DNA from: Mizuhopecten yessoensis
Taxonomy: Eukaryota
Assembly (NCBI RefSeq): GCF_002113885.1
Contig: NW_018408148.1
Coordinates: 243,508 to 307,507, forward strand
Direction of reading: 5' to 3'
DNA length: 64,000 nucleotides
Shown here: one piece after another, positions 1,833 through 53,365 of the stretch
How the letters are laid out: each line of letters starts with the position of its first letter
Position numbering within the stretch: the first letter of the stretch is position 1
The notes under the pieces: generated by a model
Told to the model about the DNA's origin: nothing
Database searches by the model: none
Seen by the model: the letters and a program-made list of their open reading frames with translations, nothing else
Translations under genes and position numbers: made by a program

Positions 1833-2072
1833 ATTTGAGTTCATTATTCCAAGCAGAAGCTAACAGACTTGCATTGTTACAGTCGTAAAATTGAATATTT
1901 GGAAACAGTTGATTTTTAGCAATTTTATTTATGAAATTCCGGAATTGTAAGTGATTAACAAATTACAGTTTGGATTATGGTCACGTGACTAAAATCTAAA
2001 ATAAAAGTGATGTGCCATAACAGTGATCCGATAATTAAAATCATAAATTTCATTAATGCTGTCCACTCACAG

Positions 2073-2144
2073 GAAAACCAGGGTGGGCTTCAAATTAAAA
2101 AAGCCAAAACCACAAGTGGATTTCAGAGCTCATCTAAAGGAAGT
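2073..2144 (+). CDS. DFRxxL mini-exon 2 (KTRVGFKLKKPKPQVDFRAHLKEV)
   Basis: cacag / gtgagt; 72 nt; phase 2-2. Confidence 0.85.
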
Positions 2145-2199
2145 GTGAGTTACTACACCAGAGAAATGCGTTGGTGACACCTGTATTTTGTAACGCTTG

Positions 2200-2710
2200 C
2201 TTTGATTGGATGTTGTCAGAAAATCAAACCATACCTGTCGTGTTTTCTGATTGGATGTCAATCGAAATATACAACCAATATTATTCACCCGTTATGAATA
2301 TTTTTCCTGAATGGTTAAATATATCAACCAATGAAATAGCCTCTCTGTCTGAATGTCCTTGGAAACATCAAAAACCTTTCCTGTCGTGTTTTCTGATTGG
2401 ACGTCTATGGAAATATACAACCAATATTATTCACCCGTTATGAATATTTTTCCTGAATGGATATATACATCAACCAATGAAATAGTCTTCCTGACTGAAT
2501 GTCCTTTGAATCATCAACAACCTTTCCTGTCGTGTTTTCTGATTGGATGTCCGTTGAAATATACAACCAATACATGTAATCCCCTGTTAGGATTTATTTC
2601 CTGAATGGTTTTAAATATGTCAGAGAATGAAATGTCCTTGGAAACATCAACAATCTTTCCTTTGCCTGTTATATTTGTGTTCTATTGGCTTAAATATCAA
2701 CCAATGAAAA
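2200..2710. repeat. Intronic tandem repeat, ~146-bp unit, ~3.5 copies, rich in CCAAT/ATTGG
   Basis: ctgtcgtgttttctgattgg recurs at about 2235, 2381 and 2528. Confidence 0.85.
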
Positions 2711-3203
2711 ACCCTGTCTTCTATATTAGCACAATCATTTAACAACGAATTAGTCCAATATTTGGAATGAATTTTCCTTATAAACAACACCAAAAGTATT
2801 TGTGTAAAAAGGAGCTTTTGTTATTTTTCTAGCATGCTTTGACAGAATTCACAAATCAGCTTCATTTTTACACCTTGCAGAAACCAGGATGTATCATTTG
2901 TATAGCCTGCATTGATTGGTTGGTAGCCAAAAAACAATTGACCACTGAAATTCCTTCTTTTATTTGCTATATAAATGAAGTATAGTTTTTGTGTTGCCTC
3001 CATTTATTCATATCATGGATGAATTTAAGAAGTAAATCTTGTTTTCATGAATGTGTATTACAATGGTGTGCATGAATATAAATGGATGTATTGCACATTT
3101 TTAAATTCTGTTTCATTTTTGTTTCATGTGCATTTTTGATGATTTGCCACGAGGTTATCTTTCTTGCATGTTGTTGTAATTAGCATGTGATTGTGTTATA
3201 CAG

Positions 3204-3272
3204 AAAAACCAGGGTTGGAATAAAACATGCACCAGCACAGAAGGACTTCAGGGAAAATCTCAAAACTGAAGT
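3204..3272 (+). CDS. DFRxxL mini-exon 3 (KTRVGIKHAPAQKDFRENLKTEV)
   Basis: tacag / gtgagt; 69 nt; phase 2-2. Confidence 0.85.
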
Positions 3273-3622
3273 GTGAGTAAAATGGTTGTTAGGGGGAGAT
3301 TTCAAAAAGGAATTTCCATCAGTATCTAGGTAAATTTTCAAAACAGTTTAACAGATTGCAATTTCTTGTTTTTACATATATACAATAATGTATATATATT
3401 GAAAAGATAATGAATAAGTATTAAATAATAACAAGCTAAATGGGATCACTTAGGGAATTAGTTAAAGTAAAACTAACATCACATATAAACATTAAATGTG
3501 TCATGTATATTAGATAGCTTAATGTTAAAAATAACCAATTTGGGCCAATGCTAAGTGAAAGCGAAGCTCAAGATTTTCGATAAATAGTTTAGTTCACTTA
3601 TTGTTATCAAATTTGTGAACAG

Positions 3623-3691
3623 GAAAACGAAGGTCGGTGTATCACATGGTCCTGAGCAAATCGACTTCCGTGACAAACTCAAATCACAGGT
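3623..3691 (+). CDS. DFRxxL mini-exon 4 (KTKVGVSHGPEQIDFRDKLKSQV)
   Basis: aacag / gtaagt; 69 nt; phase 2-2. Confidence 0.85.
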
Positions 3692-4070
3692 GTAAGTACC
3701 TGACTCTCAAGGGTATGGACCCCTTACAATGTGATAATTACCTTCAGAAACTGTTGACACACTCTCACTCTGTGCACCTGTACAAATTACTCGTCTTTCT
3801 TTCCTATATCTCAGTTCTTTAACTCAGAACAAACTTGTTTTTGATGAAAAAATAATTATTAGTTCACTATTACATTTGTCCGATCTGGTATGATAAGCAT
3901 CCAGTTTTATCCATCCTAACATCGTTTATGTGTGTATTTTGCGTAATTTTGTCATTTGTATATTACATCATTGTTTTGTGTGTATGACATCATTGTTTTT
4001 TGTGTCTGAGATCATGTGTTTGTGTGTATGACATGCATGCTAATGAGATTTGTTATTGCCTTGGTAACAG

Positions 4071-4139
4071 TCGGACTAAGGAAGGGGTTTCCTTTGGAGC
4101 AGAACAATTAGACTTTAGGGATAGTCTCAAAAGCAAAGT
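4071..4139 (+). CDS. DFRxxL mini-exon 5 (RTKEGVSFGAEQLDFRDSLKSKV)
   Basis: aacag / gtgagt; 69 nt; phase 2-2. Confidence 0.85.
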
Positions 4140-4442
4140 GTGAGTATAGCAAATGGTTTCTGAAAGAAACCTTTAAAAAAATAAGAAAAAAATATTAACT
4201 CAAAGTCAGCTGTAAAAATTATCTCTACTTTTCATAAAGTGCTTGGAAATAGCTCTATATGTGGTTCAACAAATATAATTAAAAATAAGTTTGATGAAAT
4301 AAAAGGATACATAAAATATATTAAAATAAAATGAAGGGGAGGGAATTATGTCATGAGAAATACATCATGTGACTTTGTCATGTGATATATGTAATGTATG
4401 TCATGGGACATTTTCAAATTTGCATGAACTTTAACATGTTAG

Positions 4443-4511
4443 GAAAACCAAAGTCGGCATGTCCTATCAGGCGGAACAGGTGGATTATAGGGATGCGCTC
4501 CAGCGACAGGT
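4443..4511 (+). CDS. DYRxxL mini-exon 6 (KTKVGMSYQAEQVDYRDALQRQV)
   Basis: gttag / gtaagt; 69 nt; phase 2-2. Confidence 0.85.
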
Positions 4512-4770
4512 GTAAGTAGTAAATTTAAGTCATTTTAGCACAAGCTTATAAGTTTTTTGAGAAGTTATTAAATGATAAATGATTTAAAAAAAAAAGAAAC
4601 TAACAAAAACAACCTGTCTGCAGATTCTTACCTGAAGATTTTCCAAAATGGTAATTTAGAACTTTGTTAGCGGATTGAATCATTCTGAGTGACTGAATAA
4701 ATTACTTGCTGGTTATTTTCCGATGCATTGCATGACTGTGTTTTAACCTGCATGAACTTTGATGAAATAG

Positions 4771-4839
4771 GAAAACCAAAGTTGGAACAACCTTTGCGAC
4801 AGAACAGGTTGATCACAGAGATGCTCTTCAAAAGCAGGT
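4771..4839 (+). CDS. DHRxxL mini-exon 7 (KTKVGTTFATEQVDHRDALQKQV)
   Basis: aatag / gtaagt; 69 nt; phase 2-2. Confidence 0.85.
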
Positions 4840-5060
4840 GTAAGTAGTGAACGTTGAAACTTTTTTTTCGTTCTAGAAAGTTTTCCCAAATTTCAAAATA
4901 TCAAACAGCATTATTAATATTTCATAAAAAATGTAGCTAAAATGGATGCAAGTCCTTTGAATAAAATAAAATACCAAAACTAATAATACATTATAAAACT
5001 ATGTGTCGTAACATGATAAATGACGCTCTACTGATTGGCATGTCAAACTTCCATACATAG

Positions 5061-5129
5061 GCAAACCAAGGTGGGCACGTCTTTTGCCACGGAACAAGTT
5101 GATTATAGAGATGCGCTTCAGCGCCAGGT
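5061..5129 (+). CDS. DYRxxL mini-exon 8 (QTKVGTSFATEQVDYRDALQRQV)
   Basis: catag / gtaagt; 69 nt; phase 2-2. Confidence 0.85.
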
Positions 5130-5501
5130 GTAAGTAGTTAATAATGTTTTGTTAGAAATTCAAATTTTAGCTTTTTAGTTTTGAAAGATATTCCTTTTTT
5201 CAAAATAGACATAGCTTTAAAACAAATATCAGAAATGTAATTTTACTTTTAAACGGCAGATGAGACTAATTTCATAAACCATTGTATCCAAATATCACAT
5301 TTAGTCACGATTACATTTTGTACACTCTATCATCATTGGATGTCTCTTTACCATTATAAAGACAAATGTTGAACAGAATTTATAAAACAGGTCTGTTAAT
5401 GACTTTTACTGCGAGCTTTAATCAGCGAATCCTATTTTCATTATGTAATTTGCATGTTTGCTCTCATTGTGTGTCTTACTTGCATGGTTTTGATGATACA
5501 G

Positions 5502-5570
5502 CGATACCAAGGTCGGCACAGTCTATGCTTCAGAACAGGTGGACTATAGAGACACGCTCCAGAGGGAAGT
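5502..5570 (+). CDS. DYRxxL mini-exon 9 (DTKVGTVYASEQVDYRDTLQREV)
   Basis: tacag / gtgagt; 69 nt; phase 2-2. Confidence 0.85.
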
Positions 5571-5642
5571 GTGAGTACTTCTTAAACAAAGGGAGATAAG
5601 CAAAGAGAATCCACGCACTGAGAGAGGATATCTATATAGTTC

Positions 5643-6065
5643 AAGGGGGGTAACTCTAGAATAGGACCAAAGGGGGTAACTCTAGAATAGGACTAAAGGG
5701 GGTAACTGTAGAATAGGACCAAAGGGTGGTAACTCTAGAATGGGACCAAAGGGGGGTAACTCTAGAATAGGACCAAAGGGGGGTAACTCTAGAATAGGAC
5801 CAAAGGGGGGTAACTGTAGAATAGGACCAAAGGGGGATAACTGTAGAATAATACCAAAGGGGGTAACTCTAGAATAGGACTAAAGGGGAATAGCTCTAAA
5901 ATGGGACCGCAAGGGGGTTAACTATAGAATAAGATCACACAGTTTTTACTATAGAGGAGGACCACAGGGGGATAACTCTAGGTTAGGACCAAAGAGAGAA
6001 CTGCTCTAGGTTAGGACCAAAGACTGGACAACTCTAGATTAGGACCAAAGAGAGGACAACTCTTA
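5643..6065. repeat. Minisatellite, ~24-25-bp unit (aggggggtaactctagaataggacca)
   Basis: Directly visible tandem copies that degenerate toward the 3' end. Confidence 0.9.
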
Positions 6066-6270
6066 AGGGAGAACAAATCCTGATTTTTTTTTTCTAAATT
6101 AGGAATAACTCTGTTGAAGGAACTCAAGGATTACATACTGAACAGAAAATTGAAATAGGATTGTTTTAATGATTTTCATTGATAATAAAAACTGTTTTGA
6201 AAAGTTTTGAACTGATGTTTGTTTTGCATGTAATTATATTGTGATGTGCATGGTGGTTTGTGTTACACAG

Positions 6271-6339
6271 AACGACAAAGGTTGGGGTCACTTACGAATC
6301 TGAGCAGGTTGACTACCGCGATGCCTTACAGACAAAGGT
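6271..6339 (+). CDS. DYRxxL mini-exon 10 (TTKVGVTYESEQVDYRDALQTKV)
   Basis: cacag / gtaagt; 69 nt; phase 2-2. Confidence 0.85.
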
Positions 6340-6803
6340 GTAAGTATTTCGCCCTGCCGTAGGGCAGAGAGAATGAGACGATTACCTGTCTAACGATGCA
6401 AACAAAAAAATAAAAAAACATTACAGAGAGTTTATTTAATATTTAATTAAATTTCAAACAATTTCTTTCTGATATCAACATTTTTACCAAAAGTAATACT
6501 TACAGAATAAGATGTTGGAAGAAAAAGATTTTACAGAAGAACATCAACATTCTTGAACCTAAAATTCTGATGAAAAAATGAAAGATCTTTGAAGTATGAA
6601 GTAAAACTAGATAACATAATGAGTTGAAATTAAGTTTTAATGAATTTTTACCTAACACAATGACATCTAAAGAGAAATGTTAATGTCATAATCATATCGA
6701 AATTTTCAATTTACTTATAAATTGGAGAGAAATATTTATTGTCTAGAAACAGTAAAATTGCATTGGTTTTGCATGTTGCATGGTTTGCTTGTGTTTGCAA
6801 TAG

Positions 6804-6872
6804 GACAACCAAGGTAGGGACCCAAGGTTACCAGGCCGAGCAAATAGACTTCCGCGAAGTTTTACAAAAACA
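6804..6872 (+). CDS. DFRxxL mini-exon 11 (TTKVGTQGYQAEQIDFREVLQKQ)
   Basis: aatag / gtgagt; 69 nt; phase 2-2. Confidence 0.85.
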
Positions 6873-7110
6873 GTGAGTGGAATTTATTTCAGAATCATCC
6901 TCATCAGACGGATTCTTCTCCTTTTTTTGCAGGATTTATGCATTTGTTGAACCATCATATTTTATAGATCATTTATTTAATTGAATTTTTTTTTATGTAA
7001 AGATATCATTCATAAGAGATGTATCAATTACTATGATTTGAAATGTCAAGTCTATCTCAGACGTTAAAATATGGAGTATTTTATTATCATATTATCGTAC
7101 CTATTTTATC

Positions 7111-7201
7111 TTTACTCATTCACCCCTGAAATTTCATGATAAACTATTCCAACATTTTAATTGGAAGAGTTCAAATGTGTCTTCAGGGGTGAATGAGTGA
7201 A
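7111..7201. mobile_element. ~90-bp TTAA-type MITE, family B (copies near 8461-8560, 9243-9333, 10545-10644, 24231-24326, 42394-42484)
   Basis: ctcattcacccct ... aggggtgaatgag inverted termini, often TTAA-flanked. Confidence 0.7.
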
Positions 7202-7412
7202 GGTGTATCATTATGAATAAATGTTTCTTCGATCCCGATACCAGTGTGTGATGCCTACAGAGGTTTGTGTGACACCTGTAGCTATGTCTGTGAAGGACTT
7301 ATAAATAGATGTTTGCGTGACCCCTACAGGTGTGTTTGTGAAGGACTTATAAATAGATGTTTGCGTGACCCCTACAGGTGTGTTTGTCAATGGTTTATTT
7401 CTGTTGTTTCAG

Positions 7413-7482
7413 GACTTTGGAGGAATCCCAGACGGAAGTCCTGACAGCCGAACAGGTAGACTTCCGTGATGTTCTCCAGCAT
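7413..7482 (+). CDS. DFRxxL mini-exon 12 (TLEESQTEVLTAEQVDFRDVLQH)
   Basis: ttcag / gtaagt; phase 2 to 0, closes the array. Confidence 0.85.
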
Positions 7483-7661
7483 GTAAGTCTGTCGATGGCA
7501 TTATAAAGTCACTCTGCATCCTAATCTTACCCCAATGTACACGTTAAAATTCATAAACGATATTTTATCAATTTTTTATGTGGAACTCTTTTAGAATGGA
7601 GAAGCATATAACATTAAGGTAGCATTCATCCTTAAACACATCTATATATCACTCTGTTTAG

Positions 7662-7953
7662 GTCGAAGTGGTCGCACCAAGATTCGAGACCAGGATCGAG
7701 AGCGTGGTTACCAAGGAAGGTGAACCCGCCAAATTTTTCGTGAAAGTCACAGGAAAGCCGGCCCCCACCATTTCGTGGCACCATGACGACCAAGTTCTCA
7801 CCACTGACGAGATCTACAGGGTCACAGAGGGTGAGGAAGGGGAGAGCACTCTTGAACTGCCTGAAGTGTTCCTAGAGGACACTGGCAGGTATACAGTCAA
7901 AGCTGTCAACGAAGCTGGTGAAGCTATCGCCACAGCAGCACTAACAGTGACAG
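7662..7953 (+). CDS. Ig I-set exon (VEVVAPRFETRIES...LTVT), copy 1
   Basis: tttag / gtatgt; complete I-set domain. Confidence 0.9.
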
Positions 7954-8306
7954 GTATGTTCGAGCCTTTATCCTTACTTGCTATGTTTTCCATGTATGTA
8001 ATTTTATGTGAAATTCAATCATGGAGAAAAAGAAAAAAATGAGAAAAATTGAGAAAGAAATTTTATATGTCTGATTGTATCAGATTTCTTTCCAGAACAA
8101 AAGGTTGTTGCTGTGTGCTTAGGAAAATCAGAGCATAAATGATTTTGTCAATTCAATATTGAAAGGAAATGGAAAGAAAATATTCTAGGAGAAAATATAC
8201 TGAAATGATATCTATAACTATCTGATGAAGATTTTCTCAAAACCAAAATGAGGTATAGTTATTGTCCAAAGAAAATCTGAGGAGACCTTTTTTCTCAATT
8301 TTGCAG

Positions 8307-8439
8307 AGGAAATCGTTCAAGAGGAAACTTTCTCAACAACAGAAATCATTCAACAGGAAGTTACGCAGACAGTCGAATCGGAACAAGTGGTTTCTGTCCA
8401 GCAAACCATAGAAACCTCTGATGTCACCAGAACACAAGT
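8307..8439 (+). CDS. E/Q/T/V-rich linker exon (EIVQEETFSTTEII...TRTQV), copy 1
   Basis: tgcag / gtatgt; phase 1 to 2; open frame. Confidence 0.8.
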
Positions 8440-8737
8440 GTATGTAGCATTTCAGTTTTTTTAACTCATTCACTCCTACATATTTAAAATGGACTTGCCC
8501 GGTCTGTGAATTCTGTGATTTGGTAAGGTTCAAATGTTACTTTAGGGGTGAATGGGTTAAATAGTTCTGAACACAAGTGTTTGTAGCGTTTAATCTTCTT
8601 TTTCCAAGTAGTTTTGCAGGATTCTGTTGTTCAGAGCACTTTGAAATTAATGAGAAGATAATCTAAATTTTAAAAAAATACTATAATTTTTTTCATCAGC
8701 ATCTGATATTGATATGGTGTTTGCTTTTATATGAGCG

Positions 8738-8828
8738 TTAATCCTTTCTCCACTGTAGACAATAATGGACTCATCCAGATAAATGTATGATAGAGTCTAC
8801 TAAAGCTACCTAGGGGTGAAAGGGTTAA
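8738..8828. mobile_element. MITE family A copy
   Basis: ttaa ... ggggtgaaaggg-ttaa; reverse complement of 1742-1832. Confidence 0.65.
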
Positions 8829-8913
8829 AGGTCCTTACATATGTATCTTGTGAAGACAATATCCCGTCACATTGCCAGGTTCTGTAATTTCTTCTTCTGT
8901 ACAATTCTCACAG

Positions 8914-8994
8914 GCGACAATTTTTTGGTTATAAGTCTCCACCAGGACTTCTAGACTTCAGAAATGTTTTACGACCTATTACAATGAGGTCAAG
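8914..8994 (+). CDS. DFRxxL mini-exon 13 (RQFFGYKSPPGLLDFRNVLRPITMRS), copy 1
   Basis: cacag / gtgaga; 81 nt; phase 2-2. Confidence 0.75.
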
Positions 8995-9495
8995 GTGAGA
9001 AATGGGTTCTGTTACCGCGGCAACAAGGCCCATAACACAGAGTTGGATTGAAGTTTGATTGCTGAGGATAAAAAGTGTTGTTTTTTTGTTAGTTTTTTTC
9101 CAGTAAAAACATGCTAGATAAGTTTTGCTAGAAAAAAGAAAGTAGCCTCTTTCCATGGGTATTTGAAAAATTAAAAAAATTAATGAATTGAGTAATGTTT
9201 TGTGTGATGAAGTTTTTCAATTAATGTCGTACCTATTTTATCTTTACTCATTCACCCCTGAAATTTCATGATAAACTATTCCAACATTTTAATTGGAAGA
9301 GTTCAAATGTGTCTTCAGGGGTGAATGAGTGAAGGTGTATCATTATGAATAAATGTTTCTTCGATCCCGATACCAGTGTGTGATGCCTACAGAGGTTTGT
9401 GTGACCCCTGTAGCTAGTCTGTGAAGGACTTATAAATAGATGTTTGCGTGACCCCTACAGGTGTGTTTGTCAATGGTTTATTTCTGTTGTTTCAG

Positions 9496-9565
9496 GACTT
9501 TGGAGGAATCCCAGACGGAAGTCCTGACAGCCGAACAGGTAGACTTCCGTGATGTTCTCCAGCAT
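9496..9565 (+). pseudogene. Duplicated mini-exon 12 with destroyed donor (GT to TT at 9566)
   Basis: cagcat|ttaagt versus cagcat|gtaagt in copy 1. Confidence 0.75.
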
Positions 9566-9744
9566 TTAAGTCTGTCGATTGCATTATAAAGTCACTCTGC
9601 ATCCTAATCTTACCCCAATGTACACGTTAAAATTCATAAACGATATTTTATCAATTTTTTATGTGGAACTCTTTTAGAATGGAGAAGCATATAACATTAA
9701 GGTAGCATTCATCCTTAAATACATCTATATATCACTCTGTTTAG

Positions 9745-10036
9745 GTCGAAGTGGTCGCACCAAGATTCGAGACCATGATCGAGAGCGTGGTTACCAAGGA
9801 AGGTGAACCCGCCAAATTTTTCGTGAAAGTCACAGGAAAGCCGGCCCCCACCATTTCGTGGCACCATGACGACCAAGTTCTCACCACTGACGAGATCTAC
9901 AGGGTCACAGAGGGTGAGGAAGGGGAGAGCACTCTTGAACTGCCTGAAGTGTTCCCAGAGGACACTGGCAGGTATACAGTCAAAGCTGTCAACGAAGCTG
10001 GTGAAGCTATCGCCACAGCAGCACTAACAGTGACAG
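9745..10036 (+). CDS. Ig I-set exon, copy 2 (M and P where copy 1 has R and L)
   Basis: Intact splice sites; 292 nt as in copy 1. Confidence 0.8.
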
Positions 10037-10389
10037 GTATGTTCGAGCCTTTATCCTTACTTGCTATGTTTTCCATGTATGTAATTTTATGTGAAATTCA
10101 ATCATGGAGAAAAAGAAAAAAATGAGAAAAATTGAGAAAGAAATTTTATATGTCTGATTGTATCAGATTTCTTTCCAGAACAAAAGGTTGTTGCTGTGTG
10201 CTTAGGAAAATCAGAGCATAAATGATTTTGTCAATTCAATATTGAAAGGAAATGGAAAGAAAATATTCTAGGAGAAAATATACTGAAATGATATCTATAA
10301 CTATCTAATGAAGATTTTCTCAAAACCAAAATGAGGTATAGTTATTGTCCAAAGAAAATCTGAGGAGACCTTTTTTCTCAATTTTGCAG

Positions 10390-10522
10390 AGGAAATCGTT
10401 CAAGAGGAAACTTTCTCAACAACAGAAATCATTCAACAGGAAGTTACGCAGACAGTTGAATCGGAACAAGTGGTTTCTGTCCAGCAAACCATAGAAACCT
10501 CTGATGTCACCAGAACACAAGT
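10390..10522 (+). CDS. E/Q/T/V-rich linker exon, copy 2
   Basis: Duplicate of 8307-8439 with intact sites. Confidence 0.75.
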
Positions 10523-10997
10523 GTATGTAGCATTTCAGTTTTTTTTAACTCATTCACGCCTACATATTTAAAATGGACTTGCTCGGTCTGTGAATTCTGT
10601 GATTTGGTAAGGTTCAAATGTTACTTTAGGGGTGAATGGGTTAAATAGTTCTGAACACAAGTGTTTGTAGCGTTTAATCTTCTTTTTCCAAGTAGTTTTG
10701 CAGGATTCTGTTGTTCAGAGCACTTTGAAATTAATGAGAAGATAATCTAAATTTTAAAAAAATATTATAATTTTTTTCATCAGCATCTGATATTGATATG
10801 GTGTTTGCTTTTATATGAGCGTTAATCCTTTCTCCACTATAGACAATAATGGACTCATCCAGATAAATGTATGATAGAGTCTACTAAAGCTACCTAGGGG
10901 TGAAAGGGTTAAAGGTCCTTACATATGTATCTTGTGAAGACAATATCCCGTCACATTGCCAGGTTCTGTAATTTCTTCTTCTGTACAATTCTCACAG

Positions 10998-11078
10998 GCG
11001 ACAATTTTTTGGTTATAAGTCTCCACCAGGACTTCTAGACTTCAGAAATGTTTTACGACCTATTACAATGAGGTCAAG
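10998..11078 (+). CDS. DFRNVL mini-exon, copy 2
   Basis: Duplicate of 8914-8994. Confidence 0.7.
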
Positions 11079-11781
11079 GTGAGAAATGGGTTCTGTTACC
11101 GCGGCAACAAGGCCCATAACACAGAGTTGGATTGAAGTTTGATTGCTGAGGATAAAAAGTGTTGTTTTTTTGTTTGTTTTTTTTCCAGTAAAAACATGCT
11201 AGATAAGTTTTGCTAGAAAAAAGAAAGTAACCTCTTTCCATGGGTATTTGAAAAATTAAAAAATTAATGAATTGAGTAATGTTTTGTGTGATGAAGTTTT
11301 TCAATTAATGTTATTTGAAAGTGTTGATTTTTATGCCAGATAAAGTAAAATATAGTTCATAAGAAAGGTCTTAATTAATCTATGTTTTGATAATTGACCA
11401 ATATATTTGTATTAACACTGTTTGAAGTTTGTACTGATTGTGATTTTTTCAGCGTTTTTTTTGCTTTGTGACTGTTGACCTTAATCGGTCTAAATATGGC
11501 TATGCTAAAATGAAGGACACATACTTTATGTCAAATTGTAGATGATTATTGAGTAATTCAAAAGTAGACCTAATTATAACAGAAGTGATTTCTCCCGATG
11601 GGCGAACAATTTTCCGTACGATAGGATAATTCTAACAGATTTCTTATTCTTATTGTCTTATTAGTTATGTAACAAGCTGATATGTTTATGTTGATTTAGT
11701 TTTCCTGCTCTTACTTGCGGCAGTTTATGAATTCCCTGTAATATATAGCCAACGTAACTTTACTTTTGATTCCTCCAACAG

Positions 11782-21348: not shown

Positions 21349-24300
21349 GTATATTTGTATGATGAACACCTGTGTTGGAATGTTGTTGGAATGTTATTGT
21401 TGACCCTTGCATCCCTCCAGTTTTGTAATTGAACCAGCGTCCAATGAAGTTGGGTAAAGTCTAAGTGTTCTTAAGGGGCAGCAGGGTAGGTTTTCTCGCC
21501 ACTCTGATAAATGTTCAAATGAAAGCGATAGATGTTGCCATCATCTCTTCCCCATGTGACAGTTTACACTGGGTACTTGTTAAAGTGAATTGTATTATAC
21601 TGCCAGGCTTTATGTGAAAAAAGGGACGGATTTCTAGGCCAGTGTAACTTTGGGGAAATGCACAAAGAAGTTATATTTGATAAAGAGTTGATTTTAAGGT
21701 TGTCTTGGATGAATATGCACTTCAGGTTTGTGTTTGAAAGGGGGTTTCTAAGAGAGTTTTGATATATGAGTTATCTCCCTTGAGTGAACATTTTTATAAA
21801 TGGATATAGTTGAGAGTACAGAAGACTTTTGAATTTTCATATAGATTTATATTTTCAAAGTATACATATCGTTTCTACTTAAATGTCGGATCAAAGATTT
21901 TCTTCAAATTTTACAAATTATTTTATTTATTATTATTTACCTACTGTACAGTATATTTCGTTTTTAAATGACACATTCCAATGTAAACTTGTAAAAACCT
22001 TACATTTTTGTCAAAAACAGATACTTAATTACCTTGTTGGACTATTCAATTGAACATATAAAACTCTTATTTAATTTTACTTCGTTAATCTTTTCTCTTT
22101 AGACAATAAACTTGCTATTCCTATGGAATAGAACAAACTTGAATCTCAATGCATCATTTTCAAAAGTGCTAGATTTTTTGATTCAATGAGAACATCTTCA
22201 GGATTAATGCTTGTGAAAGCATTAAGCATTATGATCTATTTTGAAACGAGAATGTAGTTAAAAATTGATAGAAAGTAGCTGAAGATAATTACGGTTTTAG
22301 TTATTCCATTTAATGATAGGTCATTTGGCATGATATTATAATTAAGACATTTTAAGTTGCTATGTTTGTCTGAAATTTATTTGTCCGCCATATTTGCATG
22401 GATTCATCGTTAAATAATTTGTCAGTTGAGTATGTAAGTACTTGTCAATTCAAAATGTTTTCTAATCAGGTAGAATTTTTTTCATGTTGACTAAAATGCA
22501 TCCGATTTGTGTTACATGTAGTTAAAAATAAGCACGATCAAAGACTGTTTTTGTTAAAATTCGTTATTTTGTATGTCTTGCACATGTTTGTTGCATGGTT
22601 GTGAAATTTTTGCTAGACAACTGTCTAGTATATGTTACTGTACATTATAGATTTTTAGATAGATTTAAATCAAATATAGAATTAAATTCAATCCTAGAAT
22701 CAAATTAGCTTTTCTGTTTTCCATTTCCAGTCCATATTTTTAAAATTTCATTTATAGGCATTAAAGTGTTAGAATAGGACGGTAGCATAATTGTAGAAAG
22801 TGATTTGTACAGAATTTAAAAAATTTGATATCAAAATATTTTTGTAAATATTTATGGTTTATTTACTATTTACTTAACAACATTTATTATTAATTATGTA
22901 TACAGAAATCAGTGTCAAATGTTTAGAATTCATTACACATTGAACACATTCCATTATGCTTATCTGTTATCACATAAATCATTGTCAGATATTAATTTTA
23001 GGGACATTTTATTTTAGAAATTTTAATTTTAAGTCTTTTGTAAATATTTTTTTCCTCTTTCTTTTTTTAAGCCAACATTATAACAATAATTGACATCATA
23101 AATGATGTGTAAACTTTTTATCGATACAAATATTTTTTTTAAGCAATAAAATTGGCATAATTTCTCATGTATTTCATTTGTGATATTAATATGCAAATCA
23201 TTCAAAAGTTTTTCAGTTTTTAATCTATTCAAACACAACGTCCGAAAAAATAAGATCACAGATTTAATTTGAATAATACTCTTTCATTATATAGTTACAA
23301 TGCATCAGAATATTCTTCAGATTTGCTACATGTACAAATGAAACTTTTAAATATAATAACCTATATTTTGTAATATATCTCCGATTTCCATTTCAAACTG
23401 TTAATATATATCATATATCTATTATTTTCCTCACACGTTCATAACCTCACATTATCGTATATAATTCCATTTCATTTCATCTGATACTGTCTATTAACCA
23501 TGTATAACTAGCTAGAAATGAATCTCTTTAAGCAAAATTGTATAAATTCTTTCCATAATATGTCAAATTGTCATATTTATATTATTTTTGCCAGAATAAA
23601 CATTCCTTTTCTGAAAACTTTCGCATGTGTGTTATATATATATAATTTTACACATACTGCAAGCTCTTACCTTTCTTACGCATAGCAAAAAATAACAATT
23701 TAAAAACTTTAGAATTTTAACTTTATTCTGTTTTTCTTTTTATTTCATAAAAAAAAAACAATTTCTGATTAACTTTTTTGAAAAAAAAATTTAATTTCAT
23801 ACTTCTTTATTTCAATTGCTAGATTGCAATTTGATTTTCAGACTTTTTACAATTTCTCTGCGTTTAACTGTTGAGCTTGTAGTCTGATTTCCGTGTGCAT
23901 GGCGGTGGGGATGAGGCTTTGTGCGTTGGTCCTCCCCCCAGCTAACCATGTCCTCCCATCCCGACCAATGGACGTCTGTTTAAGGAGTGAGGGAGGACAG
24001 AAACAACGCAGTTGTGCATTCTTGATGCTTTGTGTTCTTCTGCGTCAAAATACACAACTCAAGTCAGACCCTTTATACTTCTGGCCAATCTGAATATCCT
24101 AATACAGTTGGGAATATTGATGAACATTTAATAAACTGTTTTAACCTCAATATATTGGGATATAAAAACAAAACTGTTGCATTTGATTGAAAATCTTGAT
24201 ACAAAAACAGTGAAAATTTTGAGTAGCAATTTAACTCATTCACCCCTGATATTTCATAAGGAACTATTTCAACCTTTGAATTGGAAGAGTTCAAATGTGT

Positions 24301-27300
24301 TTTTTTTCAGGGGTGAATGTGCTTAAAAGATATGTAAAGATCTAGTGTTGTGTTTGACTTGAGTTGTGATTCTGTTCTGAAGTAAACACTTCTTTTTCTA
24401 ACCTTGCAGACCCCTTTGTTTAAAGTACTTCTCTTCAATAGCCTTCATTTTCATTTGCACATCATCATCAATGCACAGCTAGCAGATATCTAAATTCTGT
24501 TAAAGGGAGATAACTACTGACATAGGTAATTGTGGAAGGAATAATGAGAATTAAAATTATTTGAGTTATCTCCCTTGAACAGAATTTTTGACCATGCTTA
24601 GTAGATTTAACAAAATGGTAGTCAAGTTGCACTGCTCTTGTCCACGGAGACCTGTTACCATGAAAAATGCCAAGTACTCAAGTGTCCTGGAAGCAAATCA
24701 AAATCAGTCAATGATTCAATTCATTCTAACTGACCTTTAACCTGATTCCTTTATGTGACCTTTTGACCTAATTTAACTGACTTATTCAACCTCCATACTA
24801 ATACACTGAGAGTAAGATTCAAATGTATTTAGCAACATACACCAGAAGAAATTTCTTGTGAACAATAAAGGAATGAAATAGGTTTGAGTGCATGTATAAA
24901 ACATTCTACATTTATCATGAACAGGAGAAATCATATGACGGCCATATAAAAAATTCATAAGAGACAAACGCTGTTATGACTCGAATATTTTAAGCATGTG
25001 AATGATGAATGATTGTTCTACAAACAAAAGAATTTGTCCTGGATGACTGAAACCTGCATTTTGATGTCAAACATTTACAGGGGTCAGGGGTTAATCTAGA
25101 GACTACAATTCAGAGGTCAATGGTCATACTGGAAAGGAAGACAAAGATTTGTGTGTCTGTCTACAGTAAAACAAAAGATGTGTTCCTTAATAATTAAAAC
25201 GATACGAAATTTTGATAGAATTCCCTATATAATTGTCTGTAAAACACACAATGTATATTACCAATACAAAAAGATGTTACAAGACAAAGTCTTTTGAATC
25301 TATTAAACATTCATGTACCATATTTGACCATATAAAACCCCATCCCTGAGAAGCACTCCTTTTTTCCCTTTTGATGTTTCCACTCCTTTCCCCAAAATTT
25401 ACAAACTTACTTTGAAGACAGGATATTGTTATTGCCAACAGTTGTAAGACTCTTAGAAAATTCTGTGTTCCAAAGTTTCTAAGTGCACAGAGTACGTTAT
25501 ATACCAGAAAAAAATAAGCATCATATGCCAAAAATATCAAATTTCCATTCAACTACCTATTTTGATTGGACATCTAAATTATGTTAGTAATTTTGATAAA
25601 TCTCCATGAAGACCTATAAAAATATCAGATATATAAAAGTGTAAAATATCAATACCTTTCAAACAATTGTTAATTACTTATTTTAAAAAAACTAATGTTA
25701 TAATAGCTATTTCATTTATCCTTAAAGCTGTTCTGCAATATTTACCAGGAAATATTGACATCAAATTTCACAAGCCAGTAATTATCCTTATATGCTTCAA
25801 CCAATTGGAAAATTGATTTAAAAATATCCACAATAGCCCTGTCAATTATGCTATCATATACACACAATGCATGCATTCATACATCTGCAGGTGAGAAGAT
25901 TTTTTTCCCACTTAATGATTTACACAGAGCACACAGTATGATACCTGTCAGACTTTCACCTGTATAACATACCTTTCAGGTGTGTAACGAGCTTAGGGGA
26001 CAAGTCATGTGATCAATGATTGACTTTAGTCAACACTTGTGATAGGGAAATCATCAGCTCTTACCTGTATTACACACCTGAGGGCCTTACACATAATCGC
26101 ATATTATCGTCATGGTTTCCGATTTCTCCTTATCCAGTATTAATGTCCAGCAGGTATTTGACGAGGCTCCACATGAGAGAGCCACATACACACTCGCATA
26201 GCTTAATCATCACTTCTCTCTTTGTACCTTTAGTATCTACCTTGACAGTCAGGGGAGGGTCAGATTACCCGAGTTTGTTGATAAACTGATAAATAATATA
26301 AACTTGTTGACAACATTATTTTAATACAGGTAGCTAGAATATTTTTCCCAGTGACTGGGATTTTTTTCTTTTGTGAATATTAATGTTACAAATTAGATTT
26401 ATTTATTTTTTACAAGAAATAAAAAACAGTTATTTAGAAACAAAATTACAACCACCTACAAACAATTGAATTAACCCCATTTACAAGGATTAAAACACAT
26501 TTGGAGCTAAGGGGAACCCTTTGCGTACCTCAGATGAAATATAAAGATTACAATATCTTAAGATGTTTATCCTAAGCTGTTCAAGGGTACATTAGGACAT
26601 CTGTACATTAGTTGTTAAAGGGAGTTTGAAAGTCATTCATTCATTAGAATTGCAAATGAAAATTTGATCCTCCAACGATTTTGAAGGTCATAATCCGTAT
26701 CATTTCCTTTCGCTACTTAAATGTCTTTTTCTCGAAACACTTGTTTTCACAGTTAGAAGGTTTGTCAAAGGTTTTACAAAAGATATCTACAACATTCTTC
26801 ATACAAGAAAATACACATTTGAACTAGTAAAAGTATAATCCATTTAATTCGATTTACTTTTATATCCGTTAACAAAATACTTGGGTGCAATAAACCCGTA
26901 GATTTATGAAACAGACTATAAAAATGCCCTAGTACATTTACTATGGGACAAAAACGTGAAAATGCATCCCTGTGTCTGTCTGGGGCCTTATCTTTGAGGG
27001 TCTACATGAAAACCCTAAAGCCATCAGACATTGATTTTAACTTTGTGCCCACTTGACTGAAATTGAGGCCAAAACAGCTAAAATAACCAGCTTTTTATGA
27101 AACTCATATATTTGCACACATTGTTTCCCTTTTTAGTGATTAAAAAATGAGATTTTAGCTTATATCTTAACAATTTTACTAATGCCATGTTTTCTGAAAC
27201 AGACTATAACTCACTAGGCACTTATATGTGTGTGCTTGATTACTAATAACGATAATATTTATCATTAATTAGATATGAGCGTCCGGCCGGCCTTTGTGTC

Positions 27301-30300
27301 GCCCAGGTATGGTGTATTGAGGTATTTAACAATATACAACTCTATCCCGTAACTCCTTTATCTGTCTGACCCCTAGGGGTCAACATACCAGCATGTTAAC
27401 AGTGTCACTACAATACTCAATACTGTCCTGGATAGAGTTACATAAAACAATCGTAAAAATAGTTTAAATCTTTTGATCTTTATCTCTGAAAAGCTTTTAT
27501 TGTTAAAATTGTGTATTTGTTGACAATTTTTTTATTGTGTACAAATATGTTATTTCCACATGAAAACATTTACAAGTTATTCAATAATGACTATTGGAAT
27601 TTCTGAATAGAGTTAGGATAATATAGTGGTATAGGGTTAGGTGAGGTATGGCTCCGTATAATATCATTGTTTATTGATATGTTTATTTCCTATGCAGTTA
27701 GAAAAAAAAAAGGATATTTTTCATTTTCAGATATTTCCTATTTATGATATTTACTAATTAAATATAAATATTACGACTTGAATAGTATTGTTTTTAATCT
27801 TTTCCTACATCTTTCGTATTTTTCATGATTCTTTATTCTCCAAAAGTCGAAAAGAAAGGGGTATATACAGGGGGGTATAGGAGTCATTTAAAGAGGCACT
27901 ATAAGGGTGTATGTTGGGCATTTAAAGGGGTACTTTGGGAATTATTGTTGACATTTAAAGGACACAATGGGATATAATTAAGGAATATATGATTTAAATT
28001 ACAAAAGGATATTTAAACAGTCTTAATAATTTTCACTGATAGAAAGAAAAGTATACAACACCTTCAGTTGAAGCATATGTTTGTAATATTAGTAATTAGT
28101 AATAAAAGAAATGTACATGGTTTTAGTGTAATTGGTCCAATATGTCCAATATTTCTAAAACATTCCTAAGTGAATTAAGTGATGGTACATGTGATTTGTG
28201 AAGGAAATATTTGTTAAAGATTGTAAAATGTATTTTGTATAATGATTGCAGTATGGGATTGATATAATAAAGTCTGTTTTTGTGTCTCGTGAAGTAAAAG
28301 GGGGTGGGATTTATCGTGAAAAATGGGAAGGAGCGGGGGCGATATCACCAATTCACTGATGTGTAGAGTATATATAGCTAGTACCTAAATGTTTTGTCTG
28401 ATTAGAAAATTCAGAAAAAAATTGATAGCTCTTAAGCAAAATGGTTAGTTAAAATTGAGACTAAAACTATAAAATGATTTAATTTGCTGTAAAAGTTATA
28501 ATAATTTTAACATTCACAAGAAATATATGGGAGACATCAATTAGATGGAAATGGAAAAAAAAATGGAGAATATGTTTCAAATTAAAAAGTGAATTCAATT
28601 ACAAATAATTATTTTATAGCCAAAGCTATGTTTAAAAAATTATATTGGTCTGCTAAAGTGTTTTTGTTTTATCTGTAACAAAGGTGGGTTATATACAGAT
28701 TAATACATACTTAAGAGAATTCTACACTAAATCACCAAGTATACATTCAAAACAAGGTCGGAGAGGCAGATGGACTTTTATAAGAATTTATAGAACAAAA
28801 TCAAGTTTGGACACCGTCAAAAGTTATCATGGTAGTGTACTAGGAATCCAATCTCCTGAACAAGCTTATATCTCCAGTTAAAAAGGACCTGTGGTATAAT
28901 CCCAGATTTAGGGAATCTTTGTCGAGTATTTTTGGTAAGAAGATTGGAGCTTTGTCGGTCATTGGTGTCTGTTAAAGATCATGTTCAAGTCATTGACAAC
29001 TTAATTGGACAAATGCATTATTTGTCCATGTTAGATAATGCTAATTGATGTTTATAATTAAAAGTCTATGCATAAATATTTTAAAATAATTTCATGGTGA
29101 CTAAAATAAAAGTGCCATTTTTAAGTTATTGAGATGGTTAATTAAAACAAATAACATCTTCCAAAATTTGTTTAGTGGTGGTTAAGCTAACAATACGTAA
29201 ATACGTCATGCCCAGACTTTTCACTGCTAGGGTTTTAGTAAATGGGGAGAGAGTGATTTAGAAAATGGCTTTTTAGTGTAAGGAACAAGTTAGAGTAGGG
29301 AACATCATGTACGGAGACTATAAGGGAGGAACTATGAGATTTATTCAAACAGGATAAAATGATATTTTGAAGTTATGAAGAAACGGACAAGAATTCCCAG
29401 GACAGGGATGTGATTATGAAGTGAAATTTTAAATATTCGTTGAGGAAATGATTTGAACAGAGTTATGTTTGTGGTGAAAAGGGAAATATTTGGAATTTAC
29501 CTGAAACAAAGTGATGGCATATCAAAATTTCCAAGGAGAGAAATTTTAACAGCATGTTGTGGAATTGATTATAAAATTATGGTTGTGATAGGTTATTTTC
29601 AACAGCTCCAATGTTTTGGTGTATTTTTTCAGGAAATTTATGGATTTTAAAATCAGGAACACAGTCTAGTATCAGGCTTAAAGAAATAATGAGGCAATTG
29701 ACCCAGAGTTAAAGTTGATGGGGATAACATTGTAGTGAATTTATGGTTTCAATTATTGAGAATCGAAGGGCTAATTGATTGATGGAGCCCACTGATCTGT
29801 TGCTACAAGATTCAGAAGCTGATATCTTAATTAGCACAGTATTCCCAATTATCTATGGACTGGAAAATCGTTATGATGCAGTTAACTGTTGTCTACATGT
29901 GAGATCTGTGCCGAAGGTACTGATAGTACGCTAGGGCACCCCTATGTTTGTGTGCCATGGGTTAGTATGTATATACAATAAAAGATTTCAGGGAGGGACG
30001 ATTGATTTGATCCGAGCTTATCAGGGCGAGTTGTCAGTGCGTTTTTGGATGGCCATGGCGGGGAATACCTGACCAGAGTTTACGATAAATCACTGTGTCT
30101 GTCTATTTGGAACTTTGTATTGCCTACAATGTTTTTGGTGTAGTTAAATTGTGGCCATTAGTTTGACCTCCAACTTTCAGCTTCTTCATCCAGATTGACA
30201 TTCCAGCAACTTTTACCGATCAGAATGGATTGTGTTCTGTTGTTCTGCCCAGAAGTATTTAGGCATTGGCAAAAACAACCTAAATAATGAATTTTCAGTA

Positions 30301-31144
30301 GATGTTTTTTAACTCAAAGACGAATTTCTGGCCAGATGTTTAAGAGTTGGCATGAGGACTTGTTAGAAATGATGCAAAAATATTGTTGCCACATGAGTTA
30401 GATTCTATGGTATTGGTATAGTAAATAATGATGTCAGTATCTTACTGTGTCTACAAGGGATCGGAAGGTTTAAAGACGAGGTCGTGACCCCGGGAGATAG
30501 TAAATTACCTTTATTGATCGTAAAGTTTGTTTGTTTTTTCCATCAAAGTTGTAACGCGTTGGATTTTATCAAGAAACAGTGTGTCTCTCTATCATACTAG
30601 TGGAAAGCAGAGAATATAAATTTGTGAAATGCAAATTTTGGAAATTGATTTGATTGGATGTTGATTTCGTCAGTGGAGTGTTGAAATGGAACGCTTGAAG
30701 ATCTAAATGGAGTGTAATTGGCTGAATTTGTTTCTCAAAAGAAATAATTATTTTTTGTGCACAATTTTAACAGCAGTATTGTAAATAGATTGTTACATGT
30801 GAAGAAAGACAATTATGTGTCAGTTAGTGACTTCAGTGATAAATGAAAATTGATGCGAGTTTTTAAGGGTTACTATTCAAGACAAAAAGTTGTGTTATTA
30901 TTTGAAATCTAGCCAAGTCTGAGTTTGTGAAATGCATGTAAAATATGAAAGTGTGCATAGGGATGACTTCAACAAGATCAAAATGATGAAGGATTCAGTT
31001 TTATAACGGAAAATATTGCATCAGTTTGATGACGCCACATTCCAGTGTTTGTATATTATAACTGATTGAGTGTGTAAACGCTGCGAGAGAATCATTCCGC
31101 AGTTATTTATTCATACATGGACTATATTTGTGTGAAACGCTACC

Positions 31145-31223
31145 ATGAGGAGGGGTAGAACTTATATAACTATCGTCAGCAATGCTAAGATTGAGGATAT
31201 AGTTCTTGGATATATCAACTATG
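31145..31223 (+). CDS. Candidate alternative first coding exon (MRRGRTYITIVSNAKIEDIVLGYINY)
   Basis: accATG after an in-frame stop; consensus G|gtaagt donor in phase 1 matching exon 34974. Confidence 0.45.
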
Positions 31224-34200
31224 GTAAGTCTTAATGAATTCAAACGAAAATTGTCCAAAAACATTGTAAATTTGTGTCAAAGTTTTTGCACATTTTGATT
31301 TTTAAGTGCAAGTTTTTGGTATGGGTTGGTCCAGCTTGAATTTCTGTTTTTGTCAAGTTTGGAGTATTCTTTTGAAATTGCTGTTTGAAATATTATTCTC
31401 TAAAATCTACCTACCTTCAGTTATTAGTCTGCTGTATCTTGTTAATGAAGGGAGCTTTAATTTCTTTTAAAATCCAAAGGAAAAGTATACCGTTTGCTTT
31501 TGACATTCAGATCCTTATCACAGAATTGATCAATTAACTGTTAAGATAAAACCAGGGGATTCTAGAGTGTTAAAAATTGAACGAAAATAGATAAAACTTT
31601 AAAAGATATGGTTACACTCTATAATTTATTGGAAATTGATGTTAGAGATTTTTGTACAGGTGATCAAAGTCATGTTTTAACAGAAAATAAAAGTGGCTGG
31701 GAGGTAAGACCAAAGTCTATTTAAATAGAAACTTAAAACTTGAGAAGGAAGTTCAAAGTATATTTTCTACTAAAATTTGAAGGTTGAGACATAGGATCAA
31801 AGTTGAAATGGGAGGGGGACCCCTAAAGTTAATATAAATGTCTGTTTATTTACATGTGAAAATAAACACAGGCCTGCTATGTGCTGTATGGCTGTGATGG
31901 CCCTCAGTAGGTAACCATATAGAGCTATACTGCTCTGTTTATTTAGGACAGTTTTATGGTGCTCCATTTTACTACTATATCATCATATATATGTGTAAAC
32001 AGTTTTTATAGATCCACAATGTGTAGACAGGTTTAAATAGAGGTGTAACTGCCCCATAAAACTATTAGGGAAATTATTGTAGGTCAGTCTTTTTTATTCT
32101 GTGTACTGGTTTAAATTATCTCAAGATATATTAAGAAGAAATCGTGGCACAATTACCAAAATCGAAATTGAAAAAAACACCTTTTATTAAGATGTGTTTC
32201 TTAGAAGTATTTTGTGATTACTGTTGCCCTTTATCATTCTACCTCATACATCCTTCCACTCCTCTCCCTCACTTTCACCCTCAGTATCACCTCTGTCCCC
32301 ACCCCCTCTTCCTTTTCTCTGTCTCACTTCACCTCCCTGCCTCTATCTCATACTCCTCCCTCCCCCAACCCACAGTAGATGGAATCTACCTTCTCCCTCC
32401 CTCCTAGTAGATGGGCCGAGGGAATCTTCCTCCCCCAGACTACTACACAGATATTGCTCCCCCACAGGGCCAGTAGACATTAACACCCCTCCCTCCACTG
32501 TAGACAGACAGGGCTGTTCAAACATGTTGGCTAGATCTTATCTGTTGTCAGTATACTTACAGTCGGATAAAACAAGGATAATTAGCTAATCCGAAACTGA
32601 TCATATATCATGGTATGTGGCCATTGAATGTCCAGTCTGGTCAGTTTTAGGAAACTTATTTACATAAATTTCCTTCAAAAAATATCATATTTACCAGCTC
32701 TGTCCTAAAAAGACTGACCAATAAAAACAAAACTCTTCATTTTTTTTCCCTTCAAAACAAATATTTAATTTTGCACAACATTTACAAACCTGTAATATTT
32801 CCATTGTATTGGCCTAACAAGGCTCAAAGTCAATATCTCGGGTAAAGGGAAAGGATTATAAAAACAAATATAGAAAAACAGACAGTACACTTTCAGAGAT
32901 GAATAGTTGGCTTAAGGTTTACACTGGATTTAAAGTTAAGCAGATTATAACAGGTATGTAGTGTATTATAAAGGTAAAGTGAAAGTAGACAGTATAGTAT
33001 GACTTGACACATTAGGCAAGCCTTATCTAGATTTATATTAAAAAAAAATATTGTCGTCAAAAGTTTTGATTCAAATTCACACATTTAAAAAAAACTGTGC
33101 AGCATCCTTTTTTTCTACAGCAAACGTTTAATAGTAAATAAAAGCAGCTTGGTTAATACATATAAACAAACACGTCTTTATTGTGAGAATTACATGTATA
33201 TATCTAAGCTATTATTACAGGCCCCTGTGTAGGTACAAATGTAACACATGGGAAAAAATGAAATTTATTAAGTTCATGTGTGGGAATTGTCAATTGGGTG
33301 TGAAATCCATTACTTTGTTGATGGGAGAGGCTGAGGGGGAGTCTGGAGGGGGAGAGGCTGAGGGGGAGTCTGAAGGGGGAGTCTGGGGAGAGAATGGCTG
33401 GGATTTTTATACACCATAATGGCTACATGTTAATTAGGCCTTAGACAGACAGATCACACATTAAACTAATGTGGACTTATCTCACAAATCTCCTTACATA
33501 TGTACAACACATGTACTGTATATATTTAGCTACATCATACAAACCAACTCTGTCCCATACCTTGTACCCTGGAGATTTTCTTCCCCTGAAGATTTATTGT
33601 AATCATATTATCATCGGTTGGTTTATGGTTAAAGCAACTAATTTGGTGAAATAATAATATAAATAGCTCACAAATATTTATTTAGATACATTTGAATAAA
33701 CGATGTATTTACTTTTCATCATTTCGCAAATTCATAACCTGGCAAGGAAGTCATTTGAGGGATAACCGCAAAAATGTTTATGATCAAAAAAATGTGATTA
33801 GCAGAACTCTGAATAAATTATTTGACTTTTTGAAATTATCAGAATCATTCATATTTAGTAAAATCAATAATTGAAGTAATGTGGAAAACAAAACAAATTG
33901 ACGTTTCAGGTATGATGTTTTGACATACATTGTACATTCAAGGTCGTTTGTAGGGCACGGCCCTGGTTGGTACTAGATAAGTGGTTCTACATGTATACAG
34001 CATCGGTCAGATTAAGTGGTCAGTGACTGGACCTTCAACTGGACAGTTGTGATCTGTTTGGATAAAAAGTAAACTTGAGTCAGAAACACTTACAGTCAGA
34101 GCTTGACCAGTTGGTAGAAGTTGAGTCTGGAAAGGATGGACTGTAAAAATAGAATTCTAAAGAGTCTGAGTGTAAGACAGGTGTGATATATCTTTCTGTA

Positions 34201-34973
34201 AGTTCTCAGATCCTAGCTGCCTGTTCCCTTTCATAAAAAGGCAACACCAAATTTATTTCTTATTACTGAAAAATCCACTGTCCAGAAAACTCTCTTTAGA
34301 TATTATAATCTTCTGTCTTGATTTAAGAACTTTTATTCTAGTTTATTCTATGATGTCTCTATTTTCAGTTTTTCTATTCTGGACAGGTCCTTTTAGTTCA
34401 CAAAATTTAGGAAAAGTTTGGTTTTATGTTAACTTTATAGGTATAAAGACCTTAAAAAGCATGATGATTTTCAAACCTTCAGCATGGGATTTTGCAATAC
34501 TGCATTTTCAGAATGAAAAATACTTTGGCAGAATGAAGAACTTTATTATAATTATAGGGCACATTTAAATAACAATGAACTTTAACTTTATATTATGCAA
34601 TTGTTTAATTTTTGAGTCTGCAGTGTAGAGGAGCTCTATTGACTCCTGTATTGGAAACAAACTTTAACTTTGTATACCTGGACATTTTTGTCGCAGTTTC
34701 GCCTTTTTCGCTCTTTGTAATGAGAATGCATGAATTCACCAAGAGAGCAAATACTAGTAAACAATATTATATATATATAGTAAATATATGCCAAGGATGA
34801 AATTAACATGGATTTCAATGGCAAAGCGAGAAATATACAGTATTTGATTACCATTTTTTTTTTTTTTAACAGTTAATCAATATTTATTGATCTACAGTTT
34901 GTTAGGAAGGGACCAGACATGTACAACAGTTGTAACTGATTCTGTATGTAGCTTTGTATTTTGTATTGTATAG

Positions 34974-53163: not shown

Positions 53164-53365
53164 TGCTACACTCTATTGTGAAAGCTGAACAGACATGAAG
53201 TCTAGTACTTGCACTTATAAGTACTTACACTTATTGCTAAATAGATGCTCCAATATGGAATACAGCGACATCTACACTAAATGAATCTACACTGGTCAGG
53301 CTTAATTGCACCTGTGATACGATTGACACTGAAATCTGCATGAGATCTCCATGGTTTGTTTCCAG

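Follow-up and report, generated by a model that had tools for sequence, protein, structure and literature searches.

Organization of the locus

The DNA considered here is a stretch of 64,000 nucleotides (nt) from Mizuhopecten yessoensis (contig NW_018408148.1, positions 243,508 to 307,507), hereafter called the window; coordinates count from its first letter and the features described lie on the + strand. The window represents part of a giant, AT-rich and intron-rich muscle gene with many exons for I-set immunoglobulin (Ig) domains, as defined in Pfam. To judge from the encoded protein this is an invertebrate titin (connectin)-like gene, in which a chain of I-set domains surrounds an array of small exons, each specifying one DFRxxL-like repeat. 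A subset of these exons is preceded by TGCATG, which in RNA is (U)GCAUG, the binding site of Rbfox proteins. The presence on these in-frame cassettes of a conserved, RNA-level and position-specific element is well supported by the sequence comparisons given below.

The exon at 44780 has as its top match in the Protein Data Bank the titin entry 7AHS (E 1e-21), which we take to be the N2A region, and another exon of the window matched Robo2 and titin about equally. A relative of 3654 amino acids (P0031) is collinear with the Ig domains that flank the array and carries four DFRxxL motifs in the same place. Protein searches were made with exons queried singly, and no homologues of the Ig exon were found at E 1e-15. 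As expected, scanning prokaryotic and viral collections for the DNA pattern gave no hits.

The array forms the linker between two Ig exons and consists of 12 small exons with one repeat in each. It is entered from the second-half exon of an I-set domain (522-720), which ends in phase 1, and repeat exon 1 (1218-1266, 49 nt, DFRDSL) changes the phase from 1 to 2. Exons 2 to 11 are all in phase 2-2 and frame-preserving, so that any subset could be dropped in frame. The first of them, the lysine-rich exon 2 (2073-2144), is 72 nt long, and 69 nt is the length of exons 3 (3204-3272), 4 (3623-3691), 5 (4071-4139), 6 (4443-4511), 7 (4771-4839), 8 (5061-5129), 9 (5502-5570), 10 (6271-6339) and 11 (6804-6872). 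Exon 12 (7413-7482, 70 nt) passes from phase 2 to 0 and contains an internal donor after 7455; like exon 1 it shifts the phase, and neither is skippable alone in frame. The array is closed by a further I-set exon recognized by Pfam (7662-7953). The repeats fit the D-F-R-x-x-L consensus at short spacing. Across the aligned exons 2 to 12 a glutamine, aspartate, arginine and leucine are invariant, and the phenylalanine of the motif is often tyrosine and once, in the DHRDAL variant of exon 7, histidine. Exons 6 to 9 are 67-77% identical to each other.

A thirteenth DFRxxL exon (8914-8994, 81 nt, phase 2-2) lies past the closing Ig exon and has a copy at 10998. The copy belongs to a tandem 2.08-kb duplicate, 98.7% identical (7095-9200 versus approximately 9180-11300), which spans exon 12, the Ig exon and two further exons. 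In the duplicate the exon 12 donor reads TT rather than GT (9566). This duplicate may be polymorphic, or may be an allelic copy that entered the assembly twice.

Position and context of the GCATG sites

Eight of the repeat exons carry sites just upstream of the acceptor, with distances given from the first base of the hexamer. Exon 3 is preceded by TGCATG at 3069-3074 (-135) and by TGCATG and AGCATG within 3165-3187 (-39 and -22). A single TGCATG stands before exon 5 (4034-4039, -37), where the branch-point-like word CTAAT follows immediately, and before exon 6 (4421-4426, -22), and a single GGCATG before exon 8 (5037-5042, -24). There are two TGCATG before exon 7 (4729-4754, -42 and -22), exon 9 (5451-5486, -51 and -21), exon 10 (6225-6252, -46 and -24, in a GU-rich context) and exon 11 (6770-6782, adjacent, -34 and -27). 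The sole downstream-flank site in the array is the TGCATG at 1275-1280, in the intron that follows exon 1 and 9 nt from its donor. GCATG is absent from the 150 nt preceding exons 1, 2, 4 and 12 and the thirteenth repeat exon. An earlier note on this DNA had listed all of these upstream sites except the AGCATG at 3182, and every site in that list is present in the sequence. Its statement that exons 2, 4 and 12 lack a site agrees with our inspection. The distance it gave, 20-55 nt before the acceptor, describes the sites other than that at 3069, which fall at -21 to -51.

In the interval -60 to -5, GCATG occurs before 8 of the 13 repeat exons and before 4 of the 47 other exons in the window (Fisher p = 1.7e-4). 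Within the array introns, which total 5.45 kb, 11 of 13 TGCATG words lie in the 11% of sequence nearest the acceptors (p = 2e-9). No hexamer other than TGCATG (p = 4e-4) passes a Bonferroni correction over all 4096, and no enrichment is seen for its one-letter variants. These tests lead us to reject chance or multiple testing as the source of the pattern. Sense words outnumber antisense words by 12 to 2 within the array and by 38 to 12 over the window, and outside the array the ratio is 26:10 (p = 0.011). Such a sense-strand bias is expected of an RNA element and makes a DNA-level or palindromic element unlikely.

When GCATG is removed the upstream flanks cannot be aligned (z near 0), except those of exons 7 and 9 at approximately 3. 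With branch points assigned from the consensus, the proximal GCATG starts 4 nt after a branch-point-like adenine in exons 3, 7, 8, 9 and 10, that is in five of the eight exons as opposed to 2 of 63 other GCATG in the window, this offset having been picked post hoc. We consider it unlikely that GCATG is itself the branch point, as it departs from the consensus and a better branch-point-like word adjoins it in most exons. The acceptors of motif-bearing exons are pyrimidine-poor (0.54 versus 0.67, p = 0.0015). The register shared by the proximal sites suggests that the exon was duplicated together with its acceptor module, and the sites probably did not arise independently. Among the paralogous exons 60% of synonymous codons have changed, and GCATG is nonetheless found before eight of them, which makes its passive survival unlikely.

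Other sites in the window also lie near acceptors. TGCATG at 19360 and 35424 falls at -53 and -87 of the Ig exon acceptors 19413 and 35511, respectively. A divergent, frame-symmetric Ig exon at 53366-53632, in the region 53337-53840, contains two TGCATG of its own (53534 and 53560) besides one at -29 and one downstream (53835), and is a second candidate for an Rbfox-repressed exon.

Related arrays in other animals

Genomic fragments of other animals were found using a profile of the repeat exon and a degenerate DNA pattern, and their flanking Ig domains, where recovered, are approximately 41-59% identical to those of the window. In fragments L001 to L011 (T)GCATG precedes 8 of 12 cassette-type repeat exons and none of 14 other exons (p = 3e-4), on a classification made by hand in about six species and with a background of 4-24% per 55-nt window. 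Between species the motif is kept even as the surrounding intron changes.

The near relative L001 has exon-7-like and exon-8-like units separated by an intron longer than that of the window. Before the first unit the proximal site is altered and a site near -50 is present; before the second, the single GGCATG of the window is replaced by two TGCATG. These differences indicate turnover of sites. The Ig half-domain preceding the array in L008 and L009 is 41% identical to that of the window, and the first four repeat exons of L008 show the order none, none, present, none, as in the window. The exon-1-like unit of L008 has a TGCATG approximately 130 nt downstream; in the window the corresponding distance is 9 nt after the donor. 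In both L010 and L007 a single exon holds six fused repeats and is preceded by two TGCATG. In L010 the next Ig domain is approximately 48-59% identical to the window and the following repeat exon carries two more sites. L008 and L010 derive from the same project, do not overlap and possibly represent one species. GCATG is also carried by L003 and by one of two scorable exons in L002; the fused exon of L004 has no proximal GCATG. A tree of the 63-nt repeat units gave no resolution, and exons 5 to 10 are therefore matched to the six fused units by position only.

In the more distant lineages L011, L013, L014, L016 and L017 the DFRxxL array occupies a matching or nearby position and is mostly a single large exon, that of L014 being split differently. 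No proximal GCATG is present at the array acceptors inspected in L011, L013, L014 and L016, which restricts the module to a subgroup. Arrays of four to nine motifs in an Ig-linker setting recur in these five lineages and in P0010 and P0031, and in L011, L016 and P0031 the array is followed by Ig and IQ domains. Such recurrence in distant animals with different exon structure makes the array look old and its copy number variable. Several protein matches (P0020-22, P0041 and P0053) resembled vertebrate MLCK and are possibly mammalian.

RNA evidence

Raw RNA reads of the same species, taken from four runs that belong to as many studies and carry no tissue label, were mapped onto 2020-8000, an interval that leaves exon 1 outside. 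About a fifth of each run was read, coverage was low and one of the runs contained too few reads to be informative. The joints listed here are the strongest, ten weaker ones occurring besides, and read numbers are sums over runs. Consecutive GT..AG joints link exons 4-5 (3691-4071, 14 reads), 5-6 (21), 6-7 (12), 7-8 (13), 8-9 (5129-5502, 15), 10-11 (6339-6804, 17) and 11-12 (25), and exon 12 is joined to the closing Ig exon (7482-7662) by 30 reads. The exons are accordingly real, a long form exists, and a mutually exclusive array can be rejected.

Twelve reads use the inner donor of exon 12 (7455 to 7662), 11 in one run and one in another. This choice removes in frame the nine-residue end VDFRDVLQH and with it the DFRxxL motif.

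Binned depth is lowest for exon 2 (approximately 2), rises to approximately 13 for exons 3 and 4, to 16-24 for exons 5 to 10 and to 31 for exon 11, and is 50 for exon 12, a value that includes reads of its duplicate. Exon 3 is recognized by depth, its own joints not being among those listed. In terms of bases covered, exon 2 has 158 compared to 860 for exon 3, and in read-equivalents about 2 compared to 12-30 for exons 3 to 11; the long form seems mostly to be made without exon 2. That the core is covered less well than exon 12 is compatible with partial skipping, short of proof.

A dispersed repeat at 7114-7198, with similar copies near 9250, 24240 and 42405, draws thousands of RNA reads from elsewhere. 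Further along the window, 13.6 kb (21350-34970) are devoid of recognizable Ig exons and may be a long intron or a transcription-unit boundary.

Interpretation

The enrichment, the strand bias, the position relative to the branch point, the conservation and the turnover of sites in relatives together form the basis on which we regard the (U)GCAUG element as real, and it is probably functional. What might it do? On balance, and with moderate confidence, we favour a role as a set of upstream silencers through which Rbfox-family proteins tune the number of DFRxxL motifs by cell type. Where Rbfox is abundant the protein would bind the (U)GCAUG that overlaps or adjoins the presumed branch point in the eight pyrimidine-poor cassette acceptors and block the access of SF1 or U2AF. 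The exon would then be skipped, in a cell type or stage poorly sampled here. Where Rbfox is low the exons would be joined consecutively, giving the long form seen in RNA. The type or stage of the muscle cell would in this way set the number of putative actin-binding motifs, probably in graded fashion, and skipping would shorten the putative actin-binding linker.

Exon 2 seems to be an alternative exon independently of the others, and its use may be reciprocal to theirs. The sites that precede exon 3 also lie in the downstream flank of exon 2, and we speculate that high Rbfox could favour its inclusion, which would fit its low coverage.

Several points weigh against silencing by Rbfox. Rbfox is typically high in muscle and titin is a muscle gene, so inclusion of the exons would need fibres low in Rbfox or lacking a cofactor. 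No joint indicative of skipping (2-4 or 4-12) is among those listed, although 2-3, 3-4 and 9-10 are likewise absent from them. The 11-12 joint is nearly as frequent as that from exon 12 to the Ig exon, which implies that exon 11 is mostly included in the RNA sampled. Since the exons are paralogous, p values obtained within the window overstate independence and the comparison across species carries more weight. Finally, binding of the repeats to actin is a prediction from the motif.

The earlier note had gone further, proposing that one factor switches exons 3 and 5 to 11 off together and that two isoforms result, one of exons 1, 2, 4 and 12 and the other of all twelve. The positioned RNA element on in-frame cassettes survives from that interpretation; the strict two-isoform switch we think unlikely. 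It draws strength from L008, whose first four exons repeat the motif pattern seen in the window, from the six central repeats that in L007 and L010 form one exon under TGCATG, an arrangement suited to block control, and from the four motifs of P0031 at the position of the array. These four, however, map poorly onto exons 1, 2, 4 and 12, as the third resembles an exon-11-like unit. In the RNA, cassette coverage is uneven, neither of the joints that would define the short form is among those listed, and exon 2 is nearly absent where exons 3 to 11 are included. That an exon devoid of the motif is the least used runs contrary to a model in which it is always kept. With depth at 25x or below on exons 2 to 12 and exon 1 outside the mapped interval, a short form may nevertheless have escaped notice.

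A positive or neutral role, in which Rbfox or another binder of UGCAUG or GU-rich sequence aids weak acceptors in muscle, is also rather improbable in our estimation. The motif-bearing exons 5 to 11 are the better covered, with exon 4 below them and exon 2 lowest, the acceptors are indeed weak, and the effects of Fox proteins depend on context (PMC8742874). Published sites in the upstream flank nevertheless repress, and overlap with the branch point and pyrimidine tract predicts occlusion (PMC2777236). Exon 3, with three sites, is covered no better than exon 4. Passive inheritance, by which a chance TGCATG near an ancestral acceptor was copied by tandem duplication and does nothing, is very improbable: the shared register with a branch-point-like word and the similarity of exons 6 to 9 make common descent likely, but divergence is seen both in the adjoining intron letters and at synonymous sites, extra copies stand at differing distances, and the word is kept in species whose flanking Ig domains have fallen to approximately 41-59% identity, where it is absent from non-cassette exons.

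Comparison with known systems

Silencing of a cassette by Rbfox from the upstream flank has precedents. At exon 4 of calcitonin/CGRP, Fox-1 and Fox-2 bound to UGCAUG at -34 prevent SF1 from reaching the branch point (PMC2777236). Most sites of the array are similarly placed, between -21 and -51 and next to branch-point-like words. They differ in that calcitonin exon 4 is one exon, with an added exonic site and a mechanism shown biochemically, whereas the present case involves eight tandem in-frame cassettes, with no exonic sites noted and with binding that is predicted from sequence. In Caenorhabditis elegans exon 5B of egl-15 is repressed from the upstream flank by ASD-1/FOX-1 with SUP-12, with a GU-rich cofactor site involved, and muscle-related repression through upstream (U)GCAUG applies to exon 9 of human F1-gamma and the NM exon of alpha-actinin (PMC2777236). 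Several sites of the array share with egl-15 a TG-rich context. These exons are single or mutually exclusive, unlike those of the array, which are joined consecutively.

In Drosophila, Rbfox1 shapes fibre-type sarcomere isoforms and its motifs occur in sls and Strn-Mlck (PMC8742874), a case of an invertebrate Rbfox influencing how transcripts of muscle structural genes are spliced. For sls and Strn-Mlck, however, the events tested in that work required Bru1 rather than Rbfox1, and an array of DFRxxL exons is not described (PMC8742874).

The repeated DFRxxL motif itself recalls smooth and non-muscle MLCK. There the repeats bind F-actin, three motifs contacting three monomers and five predicted to contact five, with three motifs in short and five in long MLCK, so that motif number determines how many actin monomers are engaged (PMC2196421). 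The present array has 12 or 13 copies, several of them DYR or DHR variants, placed one per exon in a titin-like Ig chain, and their number would depend on cassette splicing; their binding to actin is putative.

Exon blocks of vertebrate titin are mainly under the control of RBM20, and the likeness of the present gene to titin includes the exon, downstream in the window, that best matches 7AHS. Scallop striated (fast) and catch muscle contain different titin isoforms, probably produced by splicing (PMC5963113). The papers we found name no regulator and give no exon map for molluscan titin. The scallop isoforms together with fly Rbfox1 make a plausible setting for the regulation proposed, though not evidence for this locus. 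A literature search of incomplete coverage turned up no work dealing with either Rbfox sites in molluscan titin or an array of DFRxxL exons. Repression by Rbfox from the upstream flank is already known; what is new is the arrangement, in which a putative silencer recurs from exon to exon along a tandem array, as opposed to one fused exon elsewhere.

Implications

A fuller scheme may be put forward tentatively, and we doubt that it will hold in every part. In lophotrochozoan, probably molluscan, titin the exon would have been duplicated with its branch-point-plus-Rbfox module, such that the dose of Rbfox sets the number of motifs from approximately 3-4 to 11-12, with exon 2 used reciprocally. 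If so, tethering to the thin filament would be tuned differently in fast striated fibres and in slow or catch-type ones, and other lineages would obtain block control from a single exon of six repeats governed by the same site.

For the fibre-type titin isoforms, reported without a mechanism in this invertebrate group (PMC5963113), the analysis names a candidate regulator and the exact cis-sites. It predicts that the level of Rbfox anticorrelates with DFRxxL number and with titin-actin tethering. Set beside the lineages in which the array is a single exon, the locus would clearly illustrate how a splicing silencer can be duplicated together with its exon and then retained in every copy.

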